Origin: Mytilus trossulus
Taxonomy: Eukaryota
Direction: 5' to 3'
Assembly (NCBI RefSeq): GCF_036588685.1
Contig: NC_086373.1
Location: forward strand, 98,580,001 to 98,644,000
DNA length: 64,000 nucleotides
Shown here: positions 193-56,568 of the stretch, one piece after another
Position numbering within the stretch: the stretch's first letter is position 1
Layout: every line of letters starts with the position of its first letter
The notes under the pieces: generated by a model
Database searches by the model: none
What the model was told of the DNA's origin: nothing
What the model saw: the letters and a program-made list of their open reading frames with translations, nothing else
Translations under genes and position numbers: made by a program

Positions 193-2933
<2,741 letters not shown>

Positions 2934-17629: not shown

Positions 17630-20600
17630 TCATCTGATTGGGGAAGAATCAGTGTTCCTTGATTGCCATCGCCATAAGTCCTCACCTTAAAAATGGAAAA
17701 CATAGAACGTAGGCTATGCTTAAAAAAAAGACATATATGCTGCGCCTAAGATATCACGATATAAAATTAATTACATAACATGTGCAATATTTCATTGTGA
17801 AAATAAAATCCTATCACTATAAGAACTTATCTTGTATGAGTGAAAGCACATATTGAGTATATGTTTCAATCAGACATTCATATTGGCCGGAAAACAACAC
17901 AAATCTTTCAAATGTGTCAAAAGGACACATCGTCCAGAACGCACTTTATTATTTACATTTTTATTGACCCTGTGAAATCTTGGTTAAAACCTCAATTTTT
18001 CATATATTTCAACAGTTCCATTCATAATATAGGTGTTCAAAGTACGAAGTTGGTGTGAACTTACTACCTACAGTCAAAACTTGAAACGGTACGGACATAT
18101 GCACCGATCGGAAACCATAATGCCCCTCTACTTTTAGGCAGGGTATACCCTCCAAGTTTTAACGATTTCGTAATAGAAAAGTGTCATTTCGTAATGTCAG
18201 GCTCTAATCACCTAGCTTGTCGTTTTTGGCCGGGATGGGCGAAATCCCAAAAACCGACTTAAATAATGGTGAGGTCGGGCGACTGGATCGTCGGTTTGTG
18301 GAATCATACAACTACTTCCACAACTTCCAACCCAGATCCCGAAAATATAATAGGGGTATTGCACATATGTTGAAGTTATGCAACTGCTATTATAGGTATA
18401 ATTGAGGCAAGATTTTTCCAGACTAGGGATTAAATCTTATGAAAAAGGGCTTTTTGTTTTGTGTAATCAAATAACCTACCCCAACTCAGACTCCCTGAAA
18501 CTTTACAATAAGATTGTACATACTAGTATATTGAAGTGACTGGGGAAATTAGTATTTTTTTCAGCAAAATTAATGAAAGATTTTTGTGTAGTCAACTCCT
18601 CCTACAGTTTTCAACCCAGATCCCTGAAACTTTCATTCCGTTTTGTGGAGAATGTTTGAGGTTTTTCATTCCTTTTTATAATTTTGGAACTACTGCAAAC
18701 TATTTTTTTTAATATTTGAATGTTCAGTATAGAGCCGTCTCCATTGTTTAACAATTACACCTTCAGCACATCCCGTCAATCTGAAGATTCTGTCTATTTT
18801 CATGTTCTTTTAATATTTCATTGGATTTTGCAACCAAGAGAGCCCATTAGCTATGTGGGAAACTTTATTGTGTAGCTAATGTGAAGAACCGACTGTTTCG
18901 GGAACAAATTTTATAAATTAGAGAGCTGTTTTATCATATTTCAAATGCATAGAAAGATGTTCTTTTAAATAGTTTCATATTTAACAATCCTCGATCTCCA
19001 TCAACATGTCAGTTTAGAACGAAAGATTGTCATAAATATTTTGCTACATGAATATGCAGATATGTAAAGGTTGAGCTTATATCTTACACATTTCCTTTAA
19101 TCCTTTTGTTGATTTCCAACCTAACTCTTCAAATGCTAAATCTGGTTTACAATAAAACGATCCTATGTCCCCTGGTCTACGGTCTGCTATTCTGTACTTC
19201 ACCTTATAAAGATAAGAAATCCTCGTCTAATAGAAAACATTTCATAAGGCATGCTATGGTAAATATAAGTCTAAGTTTCGTTTTACGAAAACATTCTTTA
19301 ATTAATGTTCAGTTATATATATTGACTGTTCAGCATTATTTCAGTAACACCAGAGAATGACGTATTGTATATGTATAGCCATGCATATTCTAGAGATTGT
19401 ATTTAATATCAAAATTTCCATGAACGATAAAAAAAATACATCTTTCTGTCTGTCCTCTAGTACGCTCTTTATAAAATCAATAACTTATTCGATATCTTCT
19501 TCGATAACTTATTCGATATCGTCTTGATAATTTTTTCGATAACTGGTTCAATAATTTACAATTTATATATTTCAAAATAACATATTTGTGAATAGCAAAT
19601 AACAAGTTTTTGGATTTTGATGTGTCACATTGGTTTCCCGCTCTTGAATTAATAGACAAACAAATCATAGAAGGAAAATAAAGACATATTGGAGGTACGA
19701 AAAAAAAGACCACTTTTAAGCAGAAAAGATGAAAAGGTCAGACTTACTTCTTTACCCGATGATTTACTCATAGCATTTATCATATCCAGTACAGAATGAC
19801 ATTGGCCTGATCCCATGTTGTATATCTGTAAAATAACAAGCAATGTTCCATGACATCAATTGGTGCCTCAGTAAATATGAAAATTGAATGTAACTATATG
19901 CAATAAATATTTTATTTACATTTTGAACTAAGATCAAGCTTACTGAACTCGTGCATTCAGTGCTAGAAAAAAAGACGGTTCCAATCAATGGATAGTATAT
20001 GCTGAGAACTTTAATAATTTAAAAGTAGCGAATGCACCATAATATATATTATTTTCTGCTGACTATGTGGTACTGGCTTTGTTCATTGTTGAAGGCCGTA
20101 CAGTGAACTAACGTTGTTAATTTCTGTGTCATATAGGTTGTCACTTGTGAAAGTTGCCTCATTGGCAATCATATCACATCTTTTTTATGTACACTCTTTT
20201 TTTTCTGTTTAAAATCTCACCCGTAATCCACATTCCTTCTCCAACTTCTTTTGTGCTAATACGTGTGCATAGGCAAGATCCACCACGTGAACGTAATCTC
20301 TGACACCTAATAAAGCAAAAATTGTTAACTACACAATAAAGCTGACAAAAATAACAATGAAATGCACATTAAAACTAGTGCTAATCGTAAGGACTTACTT
20401 TTGCATCTAATATTTGCCACTGAACATCAAGCATAAAATAAGTAATAATCCCCCGGCATACCGAGTCTACAGTTAGTTAAAACATGGAAGTATTATATTG
20501 TCAATATATTATATTGTCAATATAATACTTCCATGGTTAAAACAAGATAAAATTAATTCCCATTTATCCATACAATATCTTTTATCAACGAAATATTTCA

Positions 20601-22378
20601 GAAATATAAATTCATATATACCTGTGCCATCATGGGTATCAAAATCATTTCCATATATGACAACTTCCGATCTTTTATCAGCGGCTACCTGAGCACAGTA
20701 GGCTATTAAGTATGCAGGTGGACCTTGTGTACTGTCACCAATCTTACCAGACTGATGTGCACCCGCTACATTAAAGTAACGTAGAATGATTATGTTCCAG
20801 CCCTATACAAAATATATAATGACAAACTATTAATAGTGTACATAGCAGTTGTTTGAAACAACTGTACAATCATGGCAAGGATATTACATACTATATATAG
20901 TACATCACACCATAAACTCACTTGAACAGGAGTAAATAGACACGAATAAGAAGAAAGAAAAAACCAGTTGCAAGTTAGCTTCTAATTGAATTTGTTTTGT
21001 AATGACAAAATAGTTAGTTTTTTAATCAGAAAATATACAGATATATAAATGTGTATTATACTATAATATTTGTAGACTGGTGATTATATTGGTTACTCAA
21101 ATGACTTACTTGTTCTGCTTTGCACAAATCTTTGAATAGTTCTTCCATACATTGCTTTGTTTTGCCGTACGGTTTAATACCTCGTCCAGTGCGGTGTTTT
21201 TCATCCAAAGGTAAATATTCGGGAGAACCATAGACAGATGCTGAACTTGAAAATATTAGGTTTTTAACATTGTACTCTTTCATTACCTGGAAAACAAATG
21301 GAATATATTTTTGTGATGTTAAAATTCGTTCATCAATCATACACCAAAAGGACAATCGCAATATAATGACCCCTCAAAATTTAAAATGTAGAAATATCAC
21401 ATCATGTCATGAAAAGACGAAAGGAAGAACAGTATATATGTATATGTGGTTAAGTTAACTCAATATTTTATATTACATTTCATCATGATCTGGATTCTTT
21501 GGTATATTTGTCAAATCAAACACATAACAACATAATTTTATTAAAACGAATTGGTCTTATTGAGACTATGACATTTCCTTGTACCTTGTTTATTTCTACC
21601 AGCGACATACAATACATATATGTCTCTGTTTCTACTATATATATACATACCTCTATCAAGTTAATAGTTCCACAAACATTTACTCTGTAGTACAGCAATG
21701 GTACATCACAAGATTCTCCTATAACCTTCAGTCCGGCCGTATGTACCACACTGGTGAATTTATGCTGCAATGGAGTAATACATACGTATGTACAGCTTTT
21801 ATAAAGATATACTCCCTGTACGCATCCAAAAAAGAAATACAGTTTCGAAAGTTACACAGTTATTAAATCTTGTATAGAACAGAATTCAAGAATAATACAC
21901 CTCAAGTTGACATGATTTATAATTTCATAAAATTTTCCAAGCATACTTCTATCAAAAACTTTATACCAAGCACACAAACATATTATTTTACCTTACTAAA
22001 TAAGTTCTGTAGAGCAGATTTATCAGTTAAATCTATGCTGTAATTTATTATTGTTGTTCCACATATTTCTTCTATTCTCATCATAGTTTCTGAAAAAAAA
22101 GGAAAGAAAACTTCTACTGTAATTCCAAGTCCATAAATTATCTTTCGTATGTGTCCACGAAAAAACTGCATCATTGTCAACTTGTTAAATTATAGTGTTA
22201 TTGTTTTCATATATAAAAAAAAAACATGTCTTGTCGCCAAGAGATAGTACTCACCATGACTAGCATTAACAAAGTTGTCTACAACAACAACAGAATATCC
22301 TGCGTTGATTAGTTCTATAACAGAATGGCTGCCAACAAAACCGGCTCCTCCTGTCACCAAAATACACCCACTTGACAT
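17630..22378 (-). CDS. GALE: Divergent UDP-glucose 4-epimerase paralog (GALE-like), 342 aa, intact; exons 22378-22255, 22089-21992, 21764-21651, 21286-21110, 20802-20622, 20306-20221, 19825-19748, 19202-19088, 17685-17630
   Basis: All introns are GT-AG. Exon lengths 124/98/114/177/181/86/78/115 are identical to the plus-strand GALE, with no stops or frameshifts. Motifs [40 protein letters not shown]. Confidence 0.93.
20483..20535. mobile_element. 53-bp palindromic mini-element, same 18-bp arms as 4657-4693, perfect 7-bp TSD GTTAAAA
   Basis: CATGGAAGTATTATATTG...CAATATAATACTTCCATG flanked by GTTAAAA at 20476-20482 and 20536-20542. Confidence 0.8.
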
Positions 22379-22486
22379 TTCTGTAAAAAATAATAAAAAT
22401 GTGCCATGTAAAAGCTGTGTACAAACCAGGCTTTTGTGGCAGACATGACGATTATGACGATTTAGAGTATGACATATGTGTAGAAA

Positions 22487-23063
22487 AATTTGTAAGGGTT
22501 CCGCGGAACCCAGTGTCTCGCCTATTTTTGCTGTAAATCGCAGGCTCAACAACATTGAGGAAAAAAATCAAAATATTCCACTTGTTACTATTTTATGATT
22601 GTAAGAAAATCTAAGTCCATTTAAAAGTAAATTACAGAAAAAACAGAGTAATCTTTTTACAAAATTTACTTCTGGATACAATCTTATGGTCATACATAAG
22701 CTTCTGTCCAAGTTTGGTACAAACCCAGGATAGTTTAAGAAAGTTATTAAAATTTTAAAAACTTTAACCACAGAGTGAATGTTTTGTTTCCCCGCAGAAA
22801 AAACTAAGTCCATTTATAGTAAAATACGGAAAAAATGGAATTTTATTTTTACAAAATTTACTTCTGGATACTATCTTATGATCATAAACAAGCTTCTGTC
22901 AAAGTTTGGTAGAAATACAGTATAGTTTAAGAAAGTTATTAAAATTTCAAAAACTTTAACCACAGAGTGAATATTTGTTGACGCCGCCGACGACACCGAC
23001 GTCGACGGAATGTAGGATCGCTTAGTCTCGCTTTTTCGACTAAAGTCGAAGGCTCGACAAAAA
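22487..23063 (-). mobile_element. HINE/DINE-1-like non-autonomous Helentron, family B (~190-bp internal repeats)
   Basis: Hairpin GGGTTCCGCGGAACCC, subterminal GTCTCGCCT/AGGCTCGAC, (GCC/GAC)n microsatellite, hairpin TTCGACTAAAGTCGAA, A-run flanks with no TSD. Three copies in the window. Confidence 0.8.
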
Positions 23064-25128: not shown

Positions 25129-25799
25129 GAAACTGAAAAATTTCAAGGGCTTTTTAAATACAATAAATTTGACTAAATCCGAGTCTCATTTTGTTTTCTT
25201 TTTTAATTTTGAACAGAAACTATTATTAAAGATTTGCCACTGGACGTGAACCAATCACCAAAGAATGAAGGAAAGATCTGTGACACATGTGCATCACTTA
25301 TCAATCATATCATGCTTTATTTAAGAATAATTATCAACAAATGGAAGTTTTTAACGACCTTGACTGGCTATACAGCCCTTGCACGGTCGGTGAATAATGA
25401 ATTGAAAACCGTTATCTTGGATTGTAAAATAGTATGCAATGCACAATCGGTCTAGTTCTTTGCTTGAATCTGCAAATTTTCAGACAGATTGTCAATTAAT
25501 GTGCAAGACTGTTTACTCGAATAAAGAAAATTAAGTGATTTATTACATTATAATATTAAGACGGTTTCAACAAACATCAAATATTTGTTTCGAAACAATT
25601 TTCAACTTAGCCATTAAAGGGGAGATAACTCTAATAGTATTTGTTTAACAATAAAAGGAACTTAAAAGAAATTTTCATTTTTTTTCTTGAAGCAAGAAAA
25701 CAAGATCGGTGACAGTGATGTATTTGTATTTTCGTTAAACATATTTTAATTCTATATTATCATATTTTGTTTTAAAAAAAAAGCGGACTTGTAGATTGA

Positions 25800-26752
25800 A
25801 AAATTCTTAAGGGTTCCTCGGAACCCAGTGTCTCGCCTACTTATGGTGTTAATTGCAGGCTCAACAAAAGAGGAATACAATCAATAAAAATATTCCTCTT
25901 GATACTGTCTTATGATTCTAAGAAGCTTCTGTCCAAGTTTGGTAAAAATACAGTATGTTTTAAAAACTTTTTTAACAATTCCATTTATAAGTAAAATACA
26001 GATACTAGCTTTTGATCATAAACAAGCTTCTGTCCAAGTTTGGTACAGGTCCAAAATAGTATAAGAAAGTTATTAAAATTTTAAAAACTTTAACCACAGA
26101 GTGAATGGTTGTTTCCTGGCAGAAAATCTAAGTCCATTTAAAAGTAAAATGCACAAAAAATGGATTTATTTGTTAACAAAATTTACTTCTGGATACTTTG
26201 TTATGATCATAAACAAGCTTCTGCCCAAATTTGCTACAAACCCAGGATAGTTTAAGAAAGTTATTAGCTTTCAAAAACTTTAACCACAGAGTGAATGTAA
26301 TGTTTCCTGGCAGAAAAACTAAGTCCATTTTTAAGTAAAATATGGAAAAATGGAATTTTATTTTTCCAAAATTTCCTTCTGGATACTATCTTATGATCAT
26401 AAACAAGCTTCTGTATAAGTTTGGTACAAATACAGGATAGTTTAAGAAAGTTATTAAAATTTCAAAAACTTTAACCACAGAGTAAATATTATGTTATGGC
26501 AGAAAAACTAAGTCTATTTATAAGTAAAATACGGAAAAATGGAATTTTATTTTTACAAAATTTACTTCTGCATACTATCTTATGAACATAAACAAGCTTC
26601 TGTCCAAGTTTGGTAGAAATCCAGTTTAGTTTAAGAAAGTTATTAAAATTTCAAAAACTTTAACCACAGAGTGAATATTTGTTGACGCCGCCGACGGAAT
26701 GTAGGATCGCTATGTCTCGCTTTTTCGACTAAAGTCGAAGGCTCGACAAAAA
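25800..26752 (-). mobile_element. HINE-like element family B, longest copy (~4-5 internal 190-bp units)
   Basis: Same termini as 22487-23063; AAGCTTCTG...AAGTTTGG recurs near 26024, 26215, 26405 and 26594. Confidence 0.8.
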
Positions 26753-36600: not shown

Positions 36601-39600
36601 CGACGACGGACGCCAAGTGATGAGAAAAGCTCACTTGGCCCTTTGGGCCAGGTGAGCTAAAAATGGGTGTAATCAGGCAAAATATTTTTCAATGTAACAT
36701 AGGGGAAAAATGGAGTTCAAACATCTGACCAAAATACGCCTTTTCAGAATTTAAGGCCTATTGGTAATCTCATTGTCAGTACACCAAAATGAAAATAATG
36801 TTATGTCATTGGTTGAATTTCTATTGTTTATCATACTTTAAACCAATCACAACATTTGGTGTACGTTTTTGGATATATTACCCAGAATGAATTAGAATCT
36901 GAAACAGTGAATTCCTAAACATCACTAGGTACATACATGACAGTGCATCATGTCTTCAATGGCTTCCATTATTTTTTTTATCTCAAAAAGATGTTACATA
37001 AAATAATTCATAATTTTTTCTCATTGAAATGGTAAGTAAAACAATTGAATTCAAATTTACGCATCAAATTTGCTAATTTCAGATAACAGTAAAAAAATCT
37101 ACAACCATCATCAGCAGCTATTTGTAAAAAAATTTAGACCCTTATCTACCCTAATTTTGTTTCCTGATTATATATGTATCATCCAGTTTCAAACTTTATC
37201 ATAAAAAGATATTATTATCAACTGTTGTATCTGATACATATATTTTCTCAAAATATTAATCAAATTTTTGTTTGCCAGATAATTGGAATCTTGTTTCATG
37301 AGAGCTTCAAGGTGGCCAGGAAATATCAAATACCTTAGCAAGCTTGGCTTGTTCTCGTCTTTTCTCCATGTTTGACCTTAACTCATCAACATCTGTTTCT
37401 GTACCATTTAGAACAACCATATCATCTGTAGAATAGGGTTTACCGCACTACAAAGAAAATATATATATCATTTTTAAAATTATGTACCATTCAGAACAAC
37501 CATATCATCTGTGGAATAGGGTTTACCACACTACAATGCAAATATAATTATTTCATGTAAGAAGTGTTTTCATAATACTGATGCCAAAGTCCCATGGAAT
37601 AATTCATTTTAAAACAGGTGCTAGAGAGTTCCTTTTGAAAGAAGAAGCAAATTTAAACAGACAAACAAATTTGGAATAACAGAATTTGATTGCAGTGAGA
37701 GGTATGACCTGGAAATTAGTTCTTATGAAAAAAAGAAAGGATTTAAGAGCTAACAAGAATGGAAAGAATTACAATTCATACCTTGTGACATATTTCAGAT
37801 TTGATTTCTTTTAGAGCTCGTTCAGACATTACACATCCGCAACTCCATACAAAACAAAATCTGGAAAAACGAAAAAAATGCAATTCAAGGAATTCAATTG
37901 GATTTAAAGAGTACAAATTACACAATTCAGGAAGTGACAATTTTAAAAAATTTACTAAGTGGAATGTTATGTCTTTCAAATAAAAGCTTTTTCCATATCA
38001 AAACAGTAACCAAATCTTGAAACACTGTTACAACAGTTATCTCATTAAATGTTTCATGAGCAATTGACAAAACTGAATACCATGTTTTGTTACACATAGT
38101 TTTACCTACTAAATACTATATTTGGTTAAACTTACTTTTACTTACTAAATACCATGTTTTGTTAGACATACGTTTACCTGCTAAATACCATGTTTTGTTA
38201 AACATAGTTTTACCTACTAAAAACCATGTTTTGTTAAACATAGTTTTACCTACTAAATACTATGTTTTGTTAAACTTACTTTTACTTACTAAATACCATG
38301 TTTTGTTAGACATACGTTTACCTACTAAATACCATGTTTTGTTAAACATAGTTTTACCTACTAAATACCATGTTTTGTTAAACATAGTTTTACCTACTTA
38401 ATACCATGTTTTGTCAGACATAGTTTAACCTACTAAATAACATGTTTTGTTAAACATAGTTTTACCTACTAAATACTATGTTTTGTTAAACTTACTTTTA
38501 CTTACTAAATACCATGTTTTGTTAGACATACGTTTACCTACTAAATACCATGTTTTGTTAAACATAGTTTTACCTACTAAATACCATGTTTTGTTAGACA
38601 TAGTTTAACCTACTAAATAACATGTTTTGTTAAACTTACTTTAACCTACTAAATACCATGTTTTGTAAGACATACTTTTATCTACTAAATACCATGTTTT
38701 GTTAGAATACTTTTACCTACTAAATACTATGTTTTGTTAAACTTACTTTTACCTTCCAAATACCATGTTTTGTTAGACATAGTTTTACCTACTAAATACC
38801 ATGTTTTGTTAGACATAGTTTAACCTACTAAATAACATGTTTTGTTAAACTTACTTTAACCTACTAAATACCATGTTTTGTAAGACATACTTTTATCTAC
38901 TAAATACCATGTTTTGTTAAACATACTTTTACCTACTAAATACCATGTTTTGTTAGAATACTTTTACCTACTAAATACTATGTTTTGTTAAACTTACTTT
39001 TACCTTCCAAATACCATGTTTTGTTAGACATACTTTTACCTACTAAATATTATGTTTTGTTAAACATAGTTTTACCTACTAAATACCATATTTTGTTAGA
39101 CATACTTTTACCTACTAAATACCATGTTTTGTTTAACATAGTTTTACTTACTAAATACCATGTTTTGCTAAACATAGTTTTACTTACTAAATACCATGTT
39201 TTGCTAAACATAGTTTTACCTACTAAATATGATGTTTTGTTAGACATACTTTTACCTACTAAATACCATGTTTTGTTGGACATAGTTTTACCTAAAAATA
39301 CCATGTTTTGTTAAACATAGTTTTACCTACTGAATACCATGTTTTGGTAAACTTACTTATATGTTCCGTTCATCTCCAGTCCAACTACTGGACATATATA
39401 AGGTGAGGTTTGTGTGTCTATATATGAATCACCTTTCTTTGCTGTTTCTTTTTGGTAGGCTGGATTGTCTGTGAGTTTCAATTCTTTAACATCCTACAAA
39501 TAAAATGTGATCATACTGATACAAGTTAAGACAAAACACATTTAAATAAATTACTGTACTATGGTATAACATTTTCTTCCCCTGCAGTATGAACCAAACT

Positions 39601-42600
39601 TTTATGTCTTTTAATTCCTACTTATGCTTATGTTAAGTTCTTTAAAAAAATAAATGTTTTCCTGTTTCCCAACCTGAAACAGCATCAACACAACTATTTA
39701 CCACTAGTTAGTCCTATATATTAATTTGTCCCAGTAGATTGATTAGTGTACATACCCCTTCTTTATGGTATGTTCTCATGTGGTAAAAGGTCATGTTGGA
39801 TGGCAACAGTTATCTCATTAAATGTTTCATGAGCAATTGACAACACTGAATACCATGTTTTGTTACACATAGTTTTACCTACTAAATACCATGTTTTGTT
39901 AAACATACTTTTACCTACTAAATACCATATTTTGTCAGACATACTTTTACCTACTAAATACCATGTTTTGTTTAACATAGTTTTACTTACTAAATACCAT
40001 GTTTTGCTAAACATAGTTTTACTTACTAAATACCATGTTTTGCTAAACATAGTTTTACCTACTTAATTCAATGTTTTGTTAGACATACTTTTACCTACTA
40101 AATACCATGTTTTGTTGGACATAGTTTTACCTACTAAATACCATGTTTTGTTAAACATAGTTTTACCTACTAAATACCATGTTTTGTTAAACATAGTTTT
40201 ACCTACTAAATACCATATTTTGTTAGACATACTTTTACCTACTAAACACCATGTTTTGTTTAACATAGTTTTACTTACTAAATACCATGTTTTGCTAAAC
40301 ATAGTTTTACTTACTAAATACCATGTTTTGTTAGACATACATTTACCTACTAAATACCATGTTTTGTTAAACATAGTTTTACCTGGCAGTTGAAATGATA
40401 AAACACAATTTCTAATGGGGGTTATAAATTTTTTGATTGAATAACCCTAAAATAATTAATAATTGTTTAATGATATTTTATCTAGACTGCGTTAATGATG
40501 GCAACCATTTGTGATGGTACATTGTATTTAGGCTCAACAACCATAATTCTTAAAGAATACCATAACTCTTTACATGATTTTCAAATTTGTTGGTCAAATG
40601 ATAGGATCCACTTTAATTGCAAACTGCCCAGTGGTTTCAGAGGAAAAGATTTGTGAAACAGTTGATGGATGTGACTTGATGTGATGGCAGATACTGTATC
40701 CTTTGTAGCTGGTTCATTCAATTCAGTAACGCATTAATAAACAAAGTGCAAACTAGGCCAATGTTCACCATGATTTTAAAAATTTGTAAGGGTTCCGCGG
40801 AACCCAGTGTCTCGCCTACTTTTGCTGTAAATCGCAGGCGCAACAAAAATGAGGTAAAAATCAATAAAAATATTCCTCTTGATACTATCTTATAATTGTA
40901 AGAAGCTTCTGTCCAAGTTTTGTAAAAATCTAGGATAGTTAAGGAATCTAATAAATGTTTTGAAAATTTTAACTGCAGACTGTATGTAAGTCCATTTAAA
41001 AGTAAAATACTGAAAAAATGGATTTATTTTTTACAAAATTTACTTCTGGATACTATCTTATGATCATAAAAAAGCTTATGTCCAAGTTTGGTACAAACCA
41101 AGGATAGTTTAAGAAAGTTATTAAAATTCTAAAAAATTTAACCACAGAGTGAATGTTATGTTTTCCCGCAGAAAAAACTAAGTCTATTCATAAGTAAAAT
41201 ACTGAAAAAATGGAATTTTATTTTTACAAAATTTACCTCTGGATACTATCATATGATCATAAACAAGCTTCTGTCCAAGTTTGGTAGAAATCCAGTATAG
41301 GTTAAGAAAGTAATTAAAATTTCAAAAACTTTAACCACAGATTGAATATTTGTGAACGCTGCCGCCGCCGACACCAACGGAATGTAGGATCGCTTAGTCT
41401 CCCTTTTTCGACTTAAGTCGAAGGCTCGACAAAAACAGAATAAACACTTCTTAACACATGAAGTACCTACCTTTAGTCCTCTAATATGGGCAAAACCAGA
41501 TGCATTTTCGAACTTGCTCTTGTCAATCAGAAACTCTAGGATGGACTCTTTATTATAAAGCCTAGAAATAAACATTGAAAGAAATGAAGCAAAAAAGAAC
41601 AGGTATTGTAATAAGGATCTTTTAAACTTTGTTGAAATAAATTTGTAGGTAAACTCAATAAATGTTTTATTTCTAATCAACAACTTAAATTTTAAAAAAC
41701 ACTAATTTTGTGCAGACTTTGTTTCATAAAGGTAGACAAAAGTTTAATACTAATAATAATGATTGAAAGTAGCAATACTAGTACTACTAGATAGTTTTTA
41801 CTATAATCATGATGATTAAATATGTGAAAGTCCTTAACCATCAATTAATTTCAAAATATTATGAAGTCATTGGTTAAACAATGTATCAACATATTTTAGT
41901 GGTCTGCTCATTTGTTTACAGTTGATTCCATTTAAACCATTTTGTTTAAAACTATTCAGTTGATGATCCCTTCTGTATTTTATATGTACCTTCCAAGTTC
42001 ACATCCCATAATTGGTGTTCTAAGGGGTTCCTGTGTTATAGCACATAGTTTCCATTTCGCAGCTAAATCTGCTACTTTATTTTTCTGTAATGTAAAACAA
42101 GATTAAAAAGTTTATTACTAATACACTCATGCACACATTGTGAGCAACAAGAGAAACATAATATAGTTAACAACATAATAAATTAGTCAATAAATTGGTC
42201 AAATAACATAACCCCTGTATCATGTTTATCACTACAGGAGAAAAAGAGCTTTTCAGTATTTGTGAAATTGTGAAACAAGTTCAAGGTAGTACTCCATAGA
42301 ATAAAATATTCAAGAGAGATTATTAATAGAGTGTTTATGCACTTTGAATTGAAAATAGTATTGGCTAGGTTTTACAGGTTTCATGAGAATTAATTCTGTC
42401 TCACTTTTGATTTTTCTGTTGTTTTAGTATCAGACAATTACATGGATAAATATTAGTGGGATGGGTTGAGAAAATGAATAGACTACTATCTCTAATAAGA
42501 TAAATTATCAGCTTTATTAGAGTATTTGGATGTTTCTGTAAAAAGATACAGTTTTTATATTAAAAAGTAAACAATATGAATAACAACAGGTTGTGTCATA

Positions 42601-47626: not shown

Positions 47627-48777
47627 TGTATACAACAGTACTAGTCATGCTAGTCAGTAGATACTGGTTGCGTAACTAAAATGACTCAGCAACTAGGTTG
47701 GGAACCACTTGAACACAGGATTGCTAGGAACAGCTAATTGTACATACATGACTGTTTTTAGCTGTTCGCTCGTATTGGAGTATATACACTCAAAAATGAG
47801 TCCACTCCTTGACGGGAAGATAGATAGATAGATAGATACATTATCGAGTGCTGTATTCTGTGGTTGTAAATGTATCCATACTCACAAGCTAAACCTGCTA
47901 GAACACCTTAGCCGTAAATTGTGTTTTTCTTTGCAAGTAAACAGAAATATTTTCTAATAGCTTTGCCTAGTAGCGATAGAAAGGGATTTACATTATTAAG
48001 GGCAGCCTCCCCTCTGTAAAGTAATGTTCCTAAACAAAATACAATTAAATAGAAGAATTGTGAATTATATTCTTCTCTGTTTACTGGAGGTGGTCCATAT
48101 ATAGGACAGATCGACTAAAAGAAAAGGCAAGATAGCAAGTAGAAATTAAGATACTAACCTGGGAGTCACAGAATAAAAATAAAATAGCATTTCAAGACGT
48201 CTGAATTCATTGAACTAGAATAACATGGAATGGATACTAGTAACACAAACTATCATTGAATTTGAACTGACATAATTTTCTGGTTTTCAACTCTATCAAT
48301 TGAAATATCAAGCTAACAGTTGGCAATGGAGCCAGACTGGTTTGTCTCATATACTTGTACAAATATTAAAACTAGGATGCCTTGAAAGGCTATCTTATTT
48401 TTATCTCTGATGTCTTCCTTGGGAGACAGAAACAAAATTAACATATTCTTCAAAAGCAGTAGTTTATTTATTAATTTCACCTGTGTTTAACAATAAATAT
48501 GTACATGATTCATGTTATTGGTTATTTCAGAACATTACAACTTTAACTTGAAGGTTTTGGCTATATTTCAAGATAACATTGGCCATCAAGTTCCAAGTTT
48601 CAACTTGGCTACACTATTGCAACTACTTGCACCCTTACCTTTGAGAATTTGTCACTCATGTCTGACAGATTTTACCAACTAGTAACTTGTATTGTACAGA
48701 AATGAGTGCAAGATGCAAATTATAAAAAAAAATCCCTTACATTGTATTATAGATTGTGTATTTTTTATTTACAGAAA

Positions 48778-56568
<7,791 letters not shown>

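Follow-up and report, generated by a model that had tools for sequence, protein, structure and literature searches.

The mussel Mytilus trossulus carries a cluster of three intact UDP-glucose 4-epimerase (GALE) genes, and in one of them, copy B, both of the pockets that are published to prescribe GalE substrate groups have acquired bulky aromatic residues. Our favoured reading, which is tentative and predicted from the residues, is that copy B is a functional mussel-lineage GALE paralogue that would act on UDP-Glc and UDP-Gal only, like the group 1 GalE enzymes, having come from a bifunctional group 2 ancestor, and that the canonical copy A would still be bifunctional. New here are copy C and with it the three-gene cluster, the origin of copies B and C within the mussel lineage, a protein branch of copy B about seven times that of copy A under purifying selection, the departures of copy B at 27 of 142 near-invariant columns, and its unique Tyr207.

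Gene models and the three-gene cluster

The model of copy B was rebuilt from the sequence of the window, the whole stretch of 64,000 nucleotides that was analysed. It has the same endpoints as in the initial annotation, and the complete nine-exon ORF without disabling mutations that was claimed there is borne out, with all eight introns being GT-AG. The features of copies A and B are as follows.

22378-17630, minus strand: copy B, GALE paralogue; 9 exons, 1029-nt ORF, 342 aa
22255..22378, minus strand: copy B coding exon 1; ATG at 22378; GxxGxxG and D33/N34 NAD-binding motifs
21992..22089, minus strand: copy B exon 2; AG/GT boundaries and frame continuity; homologous to copy A exon 2
21651..21764, minus strand: copy B exon 3; K92 retained; F88T, A93V and V94I altered
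21110..21286, minus strand: copy B exon 4; S132, Y157 and K161 retained; T134S; GGCTN to GRGIK ahead of Y157
20622..20802, minus strand: copy B exon 5; YFNP to YFNV (P188V); loop 199-210 rebuilt; N187 and L208 retained; N224V
20221..20306, minus strand: copy B exon 6; R239 retained, in GVRDY
19748..19825, minus strand: copy B exon 7
19088..19202, minus strand: copy B exon 8; R300 and D303 retained; A305G, A306S and C307F altered
17630..17685, minus strand: copy B exon 9; CEDLWRWQ... then TGA; C-terminal NPxGF to NTDSS
48778..56568, plus strand: copy A, canonical GALE; 9 exons, 346 aa, with N206, N207 and C307
48778-48901, 49910-50007, 50957-51070, 51375-51551, 52153-52333, 52758-52843, 53451-53528, 55270-55384, 56501-56568, plus strand: copy A exons

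The stop codon of copy B is a TGA that ends at 17630, and an AATAAA or ATTAAA lies 194 nt past it. At the other end, all three copies have an acceptor-like ttttttacag 2 nt 5′ of the ATG, suggestive of a non-coding exon upstream of coding exon 1 in copies A, B and C. The model of copy A is identical to the M. trossulus protein XP_063409580.1 (P0414). Copies A and B lie head to head with their starts 26.4 kb apart, and their exons 1-8 are equal in length and phase. The nucleotide sequence of copy B exon 1 is 93% identical to that of A and 95% to that of C, and the flanking DNA is without similarity.

Copy B had been described as a "second" GALE, but the cluster holds three; copy C, the third intact GALE, of 341 aa and about 11 kb past the window end, had been missed. 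Since copy C is intact just beyond the window, the GALE locus is a three-gene cluster, in which copies A, B and C lie on one chromosome within about 65 kb, and all GALE matches in the M. trossulus genome (1.3 Gb), three in number, are inside it. Copy C has nine coding exons as well, of which exons 1-8 have the lengths and phases of those in A and B, except that exon 5 is one codon shorter. Its pocket changes are A93N, A133C, C307T and the deletion of one Asn of the N206/N207 pair, together with G203C. The identity is 69% between B and A, 65% between B and C, and 84% between A and C. Separately, the sequence P0010 is a C-like fragment.

Family membership, mussel-lineage origin and selection

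By its motifs and phylogeny, copy B is a member of the UDP-glucose 4-epimerase family (GALE/GalE, extended SDR, TIGR01179). Every exon aligns colinearly with human GALE, and copy B falls inside the animal GALE clade with its cofactor, catalytic and UDP contacts kept. GGAGFVG and VDNF are present in exon 1, which aligns to human residues 5-38 and matches the Pfam Epimerase family PF01370, and exon 4 aligns to human residues 118-175 with SSS...PYGKTK kept, i.e. the catalytic Ser-Tyr-Lys. In an exon-by-exon scan against NCBIfam, exons 1 and 3-6 matched the galE equivalog TIGR01179 best; for exons 7-8 a related UDP-glucose 4-epimerase subfamily model came first, with TIGR01179 close behind, and exon 2 had no match. 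The matches are colinear along the TIGR01179 profile. Summed over the exons, copy B scored about 263 bits and copy A 291 on this profile (422 for the full protein of A), the curated cut-off of 262.3 being one that applies to a whole protein; the joined protein of B would therefore probably exceed it. The biggest drop in profile score of copy B relative to A is in exon 5.

Copies A and B share 237-238 of 342 residues, in agreement with the roughly 69% identity to a canonical GALE 26 kb off that was first reported, and the heavy divergence noted at synonymous sites is reflected in an NG86 dS of 1.63 and in 47% identity at four-fold sites. In ML trees, copies B, C and A and another mytilid sequence formed one clade (100/99) inside the bivalves, including scallops and oysters; by these trees, copies B and C originated within the mussel lineage, after its split from scallops and oysters. 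A topology in which copy B split before the mytilid P0297 was not rejected (AU p = 0.21). The ML branch of copy B measured 0.61, that of copy A about 0.08 and that of copy C 0.18.

Copy B is under purifying selection, though its protein evolved much faster than that of copy A. Codon ML gave it an omega of 0.11 with free and 0.19 with equal branch lengths, values that are averages for a long branch on which dS is near saturation and that are compatible with a recent relaxation or silencing, and omega = 1 was rejected (p = 3e-11 and 6e-32). The proposal that copy B was retained by selection, for which a dN/dS below 1 had been named as the check, agrees with these values.

Active-site residues and the two specificity pockets

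The exons of copy B were aligned one by one to human GALE chains, the numbering of which is used here, and R239 was placed from the A/B alignment. Copy B retains GxxGxxG, D33/N34, K92, S132, Y157, K161, N187, R239, R300 and D303, which upholds what the initial annotation had said of the NAD, catalytic and UDP-contact residues, and the contacts to UDP and the hexose O6 (N187, L208, R239, R300 and D303) are present. Every pocket change that had been listed was verified against the human chains, namely F88T, A93V, V94I, T134S, G152R/C153G/T154I/N155K, P188V, N206A, N207Y and C307F, with codons 20715-20710 reading A-Y and 19157-19155 reading F. Further changes relative to human GALE are E199D, D200S, P201T, I204P, M209I, P210A, N224V, A305G and A306S. 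The codons at the specificity positions are the following.

20710..20715, minus strand: codons of human 206/207 (C2 pocket); Ala-Tyr instead of Asn-Asn
19155..19157, minus strand: codon of human 307 (C5 pocket, "gatekeeper"); Phe instead of Cys

Loop 199-210 of copy B has lost three prolines and gained one. Among the 335 GalE/GALE sequences compared, a Tyr at 207 occurs in copy B alone, and the combination of Y207 and F307 with the rebuilt loop is absent elsewhere; a Tyr at this position in GalE is without characterised precedent. At near-invariant columns (at least 90% conserved, n = 142), copy B departs at 27, copy C at 11 and copy A at 3, and the conserved columns changed in copy B are 6 of 9 in loop 199-210 versus 21 of 133 elsewhere.

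In Bifidobacterium GalE, Lys85, Asn200 and Cys299 (human K92, N207 and C307) prescribe the substrate groups (PMC6668579). Group 1 enzymes, whose C5 pocket holds a bulky Tyr or Leu, use UDP-Glc/Gal only, and the C2 pocket of the UDP-Glc-specific Trypanosoma GalE contains a large His; in group 2, a small Cys or Ser leaves a large C5 pocket, and a flexible C2 Asn swings out for the N-acetyl group (PMC6668579). Copy B differs from human and other group 2 enzymes at both positions, since Phe307 replaces the small Cys, and Tyr207 with Ala206 replaces the flexible Asn, that admit N-acetylated sugars, whereas copy A keeps N206, N207 and C307. The rebuilt loop 199-210, P188V in the YFNP motif, F88T, A93V and V94I set it further apart from human GALE. 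Its bulky C5 side chain is of the same kind as that of group 1 enzymes (E. coli Tyr299; Leu in T. brucei), and its large ring-bearing C2 side chain recalls His221 of T. brucei; however, copy B has Phe and Tyr where these enzymes have Tyr/Leu and Asn/His, and it arises within the animal group-2-type GALE clade and not from the group 1a/1b clades. Copy B may therefore work like a group 1 GalE, but by ancestry it is not a member of that group.

Because bulky residues in the C2 and C5 pockets are the published association of group 1, a narrowed form of the known activity is the likeliest for copy B. We propose that aromatic bulk would fill both specificity pockets, through N207Y in C2 and C307F in C5, that N-acetylated sugars would then no longer be admitted, and that the bifunctional group 2 ancestor would have been narrowed in copy B to a group-1-like epimerase of UDP-Glc and UDP-Gal only. 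The bifunctional role would stay with copy A, and copy C has its separate set of pocket residues (C307T, one Asn deleted and A93N). The rebuilt sugar pocket put forward in the initial annotation is thus retained in that the published positions 207 and 307 are altered, but a "new nucleotide-sugar enzyme" with an "extra interconversion route" is less likely than such a narrowing; of the substrates it had offered, non-acetylated hexoses only is the likeliest, and a pentose or deoxy UDP-sugar is a minority possibility.

It is unlikely, in our estimate, that copy B is instead a redundant bifunctional duplicate, kept because of dosage or because its expression is specific to a tissue or stage, in which the pocket changes are tolerated drift. 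Such a duplicate would be consistent with the retention of all catalytic, NAD and UDP residues, with an omega well under 1 and with a fairly even distribution of the A-B differences over the protein, at 8-12 per 30 residues. However, both specificity positions are now bulky, the conserved-column changes are enriched in the C2-pocket loop, and the 307-equivalent residue alone shifts specificity, as found by mutagenesis and structures (PMC6668579).

A shrunken and more aromatic pocket could also have been fitted to a new substrate, such as a UDP-pentose (Xyl/Ara), a hexose in 6-deoxy or methylated form, or a uronic acid, which we consider very unlikely. The uniqueness of Y207, F307 and the rebuilt loop, the accelerated protein evolution under maintained selection, and the parallel pocket changes of copy C, which suggest a diversification of specificity within the cluster, all point in this direction, and with a similarly slim chance copy B would be retuned to a UDP-sugar outside those of canonical animal GALE, the cluster being a natural radiation of nucleotide-sugar specificities in one animal genome. 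Against this, the UDP-Xyl and UDP-GlcA 4-epimerases known so far belong to other SDR clades. Moreover, copy B retains all UDP contacts and N187, the residue that recognises the hexose O6 hydroxyl in GalE structures (PMC6668579). In the neighbourhood are the remaining GALE copies along with an actin gene and repeats, which likewise give no biochemical or metabolic context.

GalE/GALE is a textbook case in which a few pocket residues set the substrate range, and to our knowledge nearly all the evidence on its specificity comes from point mutants or from comparisons across distantly related enzymes of bacteria, protists and humans. Here, one animal has three recently related intact copies, the canonical A, the aromatic-filled B with a rebuilt loop and the differently altered C, and if the predicted division of labour between a narrowed copy B and a bifunctional copy A holds, the two-pocket model would have in them a clean experiment of nature. 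Such a division would also hint at a separate regulation of UDP-Gal and UDP-GalNAc supply in mussels, with a bearing on their glycans, which are unusually diverse. If copy B is unexpressed or inactive, it would be a commonplace lineage-specific duplicate, in a genome whose gene-family expansion is known.

Invariant positions and related sequences

About half of the 27 departures of copy B are conservative (V/I, T/S, L/M, Y/F), which is what one would expect if the protein is still able to fold. P188V, P201T, P210A and G218D hit positions that are invariant in 123 sequences, and such changes could impair NAD handling or activity instead of tuning specificity. Copy B might then be decaying, silenced or catalytically crippled, for instance a copy recently on its way to a pseudogene, a dispensable gene of the presence/absence kind or a protein retained for some non-enzymatic role, which we hold to be decidedly unlikely. 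The ORF, intact over nine exons and with canonical splice sites throughout even at a dS of about 1.6, the strong rejection of omega = 1, and the intact catalytic triad and cofactor motif argue against decay, to be set against the near-invariant departures, N207Y among them, and the loss of the conserved C-terminal NPxG motif.

The searches for B-like sequences bear on decay as well. With copy B exon 5 as the query against 1.84 billion cluster representatives, the best 150 matches were all nearer to A than to B, and the metagenome contigs gave bacterial GalE only, at 54-59% identity. A profile search from alignment A3 recovered many named mollusc GALEs, with no B-like or C-like protein among the matches listed, where the lowest scored 513 bits and the models of B and C score 551 and 517; the absence of a full-length B-like protein from these matches would fit a decaying copy. 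However, this search covered cluster representatives within a length window, and even P0277, which heads the query alignment, was missing; therefore, the absence of a B-like match is not evidence, and its weight for decay is small. For GALE paralogues of molluscs or of Mytilus, the literature yielded nothing specific. A hidden orthologue of copy B among the 123 aligned sequences was rejected, the best sharer, P0021, being a distant GalE, and P0125 is a Hungatella GalE whose full-length search gave Clostridia only.

Beside copy B, which we prefer to read as a functional epimerase with a narrowed substrate range, the horseshoe-crab "UDP-glucose 4-epimerase-like" proteins (P0006 of Tachypleus and P0155 of Limulus) are likewise divergent animal GALE paralogues on a long branch (1.5). 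In their loop, GDDSKGPPQNLMPF, E199D, D200S and a Pro at 204 are common to copy B, whereas their GxxGxxG is lost (LLLTSSCQYLGSH) and N207 is kept, the opposite of copy B, in which the motif is kept and N207 is changed.

Organization of the GALE cluster

Rebuilt from the window sequence, copy B, the GALE paralogue flagged in the initial annotation, forms an ORF of 1029 nt (342 codons plus TGA) from nine exon segments joined by canonical GT-AG introns throughout, and re-derivation returned the same span (22378-17630) and exon count as first proposed.

Exons of copy B
22378-22255, minus, exon 1, 124 nt
22089-21992, minus, exon 2, 98 nt
21764-21651, minus, exon 3, 114 nt
21286-21110, minus, exon 4, 177 nt
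20802-20622, minus, exon 5, 181 nt
20306-20221, minus, exon 6, 86 nt
19825-19748, minus, exon 7, 78 nt
19202-19088, minus, exon 8, 115 nt
17685-17630, minus, exon 9, ending with TGA

Exons 1, 3 and 4 matched Pfam Epimerase. In the exon-by-exon NCBIfam scan, galE (TIGR01179) ranked first for exons 1 and 3-6; for exons 7-8 it came just behind a related UDP-glucose 4-epimerase subfamily model. Exon 2 gave no match, and the matches were colinear along the galE profile.

The canonical copy A (346 aa, plus strand, 48778-56568) matches copy B exactly in the length and phase of exons 1-8; the two start codons lie 26.4 kb apart, and the genes are transcribed away from one another. Its exon model is validated by identity at all 346 residues to XP_063409580.1 (P0414; 'UDP-glucose 4-epimerase-like [Mytilus trossulus]'). 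As annotated, A and B agree at 237-238 of 342 aligned positions and their synonymous sites are strongly diverged (NG86 dS 1.63, dN 0.19, dN/dS 0.12; four-fold degenerate sites 47% identical). The largest loss of profile score from A to B falls in exon 5 (TIGR01179, 81 vs 70 bits; subfamily model PRK10675, 103 vs 66 bits).

A six-frame search of the whole 1.3 Gb genome with exon 5 of copy B returned only three matches, namely B, A and a third copy, C, whose exon 5 lies 13.5 kb past the window end in separately fetched downstream DNA (L005).

L005:1092-8277 (window-equivalent 75092-82277), plus, copy C, nine GT-AG exons, intact, 341 aa

Therefore, copy B, initially described as a second GALE gene, is indeed an additional intact copy, but belongs to a three-gene cluster. 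The copy C protein shares 84% identity with A and 65% with B. Exon 5 of copy C has lost one codon, and with it one Asn of the N206/N207 pair (human numbering, as throughout); the protein further carries A93N, A133C, G203C and C307T. The same deletion occurs in P0010, a 112-aa genomic fragment from public assemblies that is 93% identical to C across exon 5.

Age of the copies and selection on copy B

A profile search with an alignment (A3) of two full-length scaffolds plus the exons of copy B returned many named mollusc GALEs. In ML trees (LG+C20), A with its Mytilus orthologues, C, B and the mytilid sequence P0297 formed one clade (100/99 support) nested in a bivalve group with scallops, pearl oysters and oysters, which places both duplications in the mussel lineage. 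The branching within the clade was (P0297,(B,(C,A))) with 88/82 support, and the AU test did not reject a split of B ahead of P0297 (p = 0.21). Since the A orthologues of other Mytilus species are 97-99% identical, the duplications are much older than the radiation of these species. Branch lengths after duplication were 0.61 for B, 0.18 for C and about 0.08 for A.

A GY94-type codon model (F3x4) was fitted to the A/B/C star. With free branch lengths, omega was 0.06 for A, 0.11 for B and 0.08 for C, and with equal neutral branch lengths 0.04, 0.19 and 0.07, respectively, values whose exact size is soft because dS is near saturation; omega = 1 for B was rejected in both fits (p = 3e-11 and p = 6e-32). 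These estimates clearly indicate purifying selection on copy B, in line with its proposed retention at a dN/dS below 1. One omega shared by the three copies was also rejected (p = 3e-14, equal branch lengths), and purifying selection on B has been either weaker than that on A, by a factor of 2-5, or interrupted by adaptive change.

No B-like orthologue was retrieved by the protein search, which covered cluster representatives inside a length window. In a local rerun of A3 that exactly reproduced the reported search scores, the copy B protein would score 551 bits, vs 513 for the lowest listed match. P0277, the first row of the A3 query, was itself missing from the results because the representative of its cluster is a 57-aa fragment; with representatives only, a length window and P0277 also missed, the absence of copy B orthologues says little.

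Remodelling of the sugar-binding pocket

Aligned exon by exon against the solved human GALE chains, copy B retains G9xxG12xxG15, D33/N34, K92, S132, Y157, K161, N187, L208, R300 and D303, as well as R239 within GVRDY. It is changed in its N-terminal half (F88T, A93V, V94I, T134S, G152R, C153G, T154I, N155K), at positions 188-210 (P188V, E199D, D200S, P201T, I204P, N206A, N207Y, M209I, P210A) and beyond (N224V, A305G, A306S, C307F). The kept and changed residues listed in the initial annotation are borne out by these alignments, and its A206/Y207/F307 signature was read directly from the codons.

20715-20710, minus, Ala-Tyr codons of copy B (human 206-207)
19157-19155, minus, Phe codon of copy B (human 307)

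When the three copies are aligned with 123 GalE/GALE proteins, most of them from animals and some from bacteria, copy B departs at 27 of the 142 columns conserved at 90% or more, C at 11 and A at 3. About half of the departures of B are conservative, while P188V, P201T, N207Y, P210A and G218D fall at columns invariant in all 123. The departures concentrate in the loop 199-210 (6/9 conserved columns vs 21/133 elsewhere, Fisher p = 0.0016) and in the region 185-231 (11/28 vs 16/114, p = 0.005), both regions having been picked post hoc. The loop motif is recognisable in 335 sequences, of which 329 have Asn at position 207 and only copy B has Tyr; at position 307, Cys occurs in 211 of them, Val in 37 and Phe in 4. 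Two horseshoe-crab 'UDP-glucose 4-epimerase-like' proteins (P0006/P0155; Tachypleus, Limulus) share E199D, D200S and Pro204 with copy B in this loop, which may have been remodelled in parallel in this other animal lineage; their branch is very long (1.5), and GxxGxxG is lost.

The equivalents of K92, N207 and C307 differ among three GalE groups and 'prescribe their substrate specificity'. The size of the C5 pocket, set at position 307, matters most: the pocket is large with Cys or Ser, as in groups 2 and 3, and small with Tyr or Leu, as in group 1, which acts on UDP-Glc/Gal only (PMC6668579). The C2-pocket Asn swings out for the N-acetyl group in the human and Bifidobacterium enzymes, whereas the UDP-Glc-specific Trypanosoma enzyme has a large His in its place, and N187 recognizes O6 (PMC6668579). 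Copy B keeps the catalytic machinery and the residues that contact UDP and O6, but aromatic side chains fill both its C2 and its C5 pocket. Its position 199 is also changed, where we take E199 to be the partner of the swung-out Asn in the human UDP-GlcNAc complex. The most economical reading of these residues is that copy B may be a working 4-epimerase limited to non-acetylated UDP-hexoses, that A would still be bifunctional, and that C, with Thr at 307 and a shortened Asn pair, may be biased otherwise. The annotated reading as a candidate new enzyme is partly supported: copy B is a selected and unusually remodelled GALE paralogue, and the evidence points to a known specificity narrowed within a three-copy mussel cluster rather than to a new nucleotide-sugar reaction. 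Copy B belongs to a well-known kind of enzyme, and the proposal is readily testable.

Other features of the locus

Exon 1 is far more alike than the rest of the genes, with nucleotide identities of 93% (A-B), 90% (A-C) and 95% (B-C) vs 60-76% for the other A-B exons, and the 150 nt flanking it on each side are at chance level (about 50%). The pattern resembles that of gene conversion restricted to this exon, or of constrained synonymous sites. In all three copies, an acceptor-like pyrimidine tract with an 'acag' end lies 2 nt upstream of the ATG, which suggests a spliced non-coding exon upstream.

Exon 1 and the acceptor-like tract ahead of it
22255-22378, minus, exon 1 of B; tract 22379-22390
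48778-48901, plus, exon 1 of A; tract 48766-48777
L005:1092-1215, plus, exon 1 of C; tract L005:1080-1091

Further features of the window
193-1266, minus, actin gene, or a large exon of one, at the start of the window, 357-aa frame with a strong Pfam Actin match (447 bits, profile 43-410)
38072-40384, satellite array in the B-A spacer, 36-bp unit x64, 75% matches
22480-22976, 25799-26676, 40778-41347, short tandem arrays of one family of repeats, unit about 190 bp
41252-41683, minus, 144-aa open frame

One copy of the 190-bp repeat adjoins the 5′ side of copy B and gives rise to an in-frame upstream ORF that is spurious; its peptide recurs at 40858-40778 and 25873-25799. The 144-aa frame, perhaps a gene fragment or exon, weakly matches the Rtf2 RING-finger at a score under the threshold (24.8 bits; cut-off 27.4).
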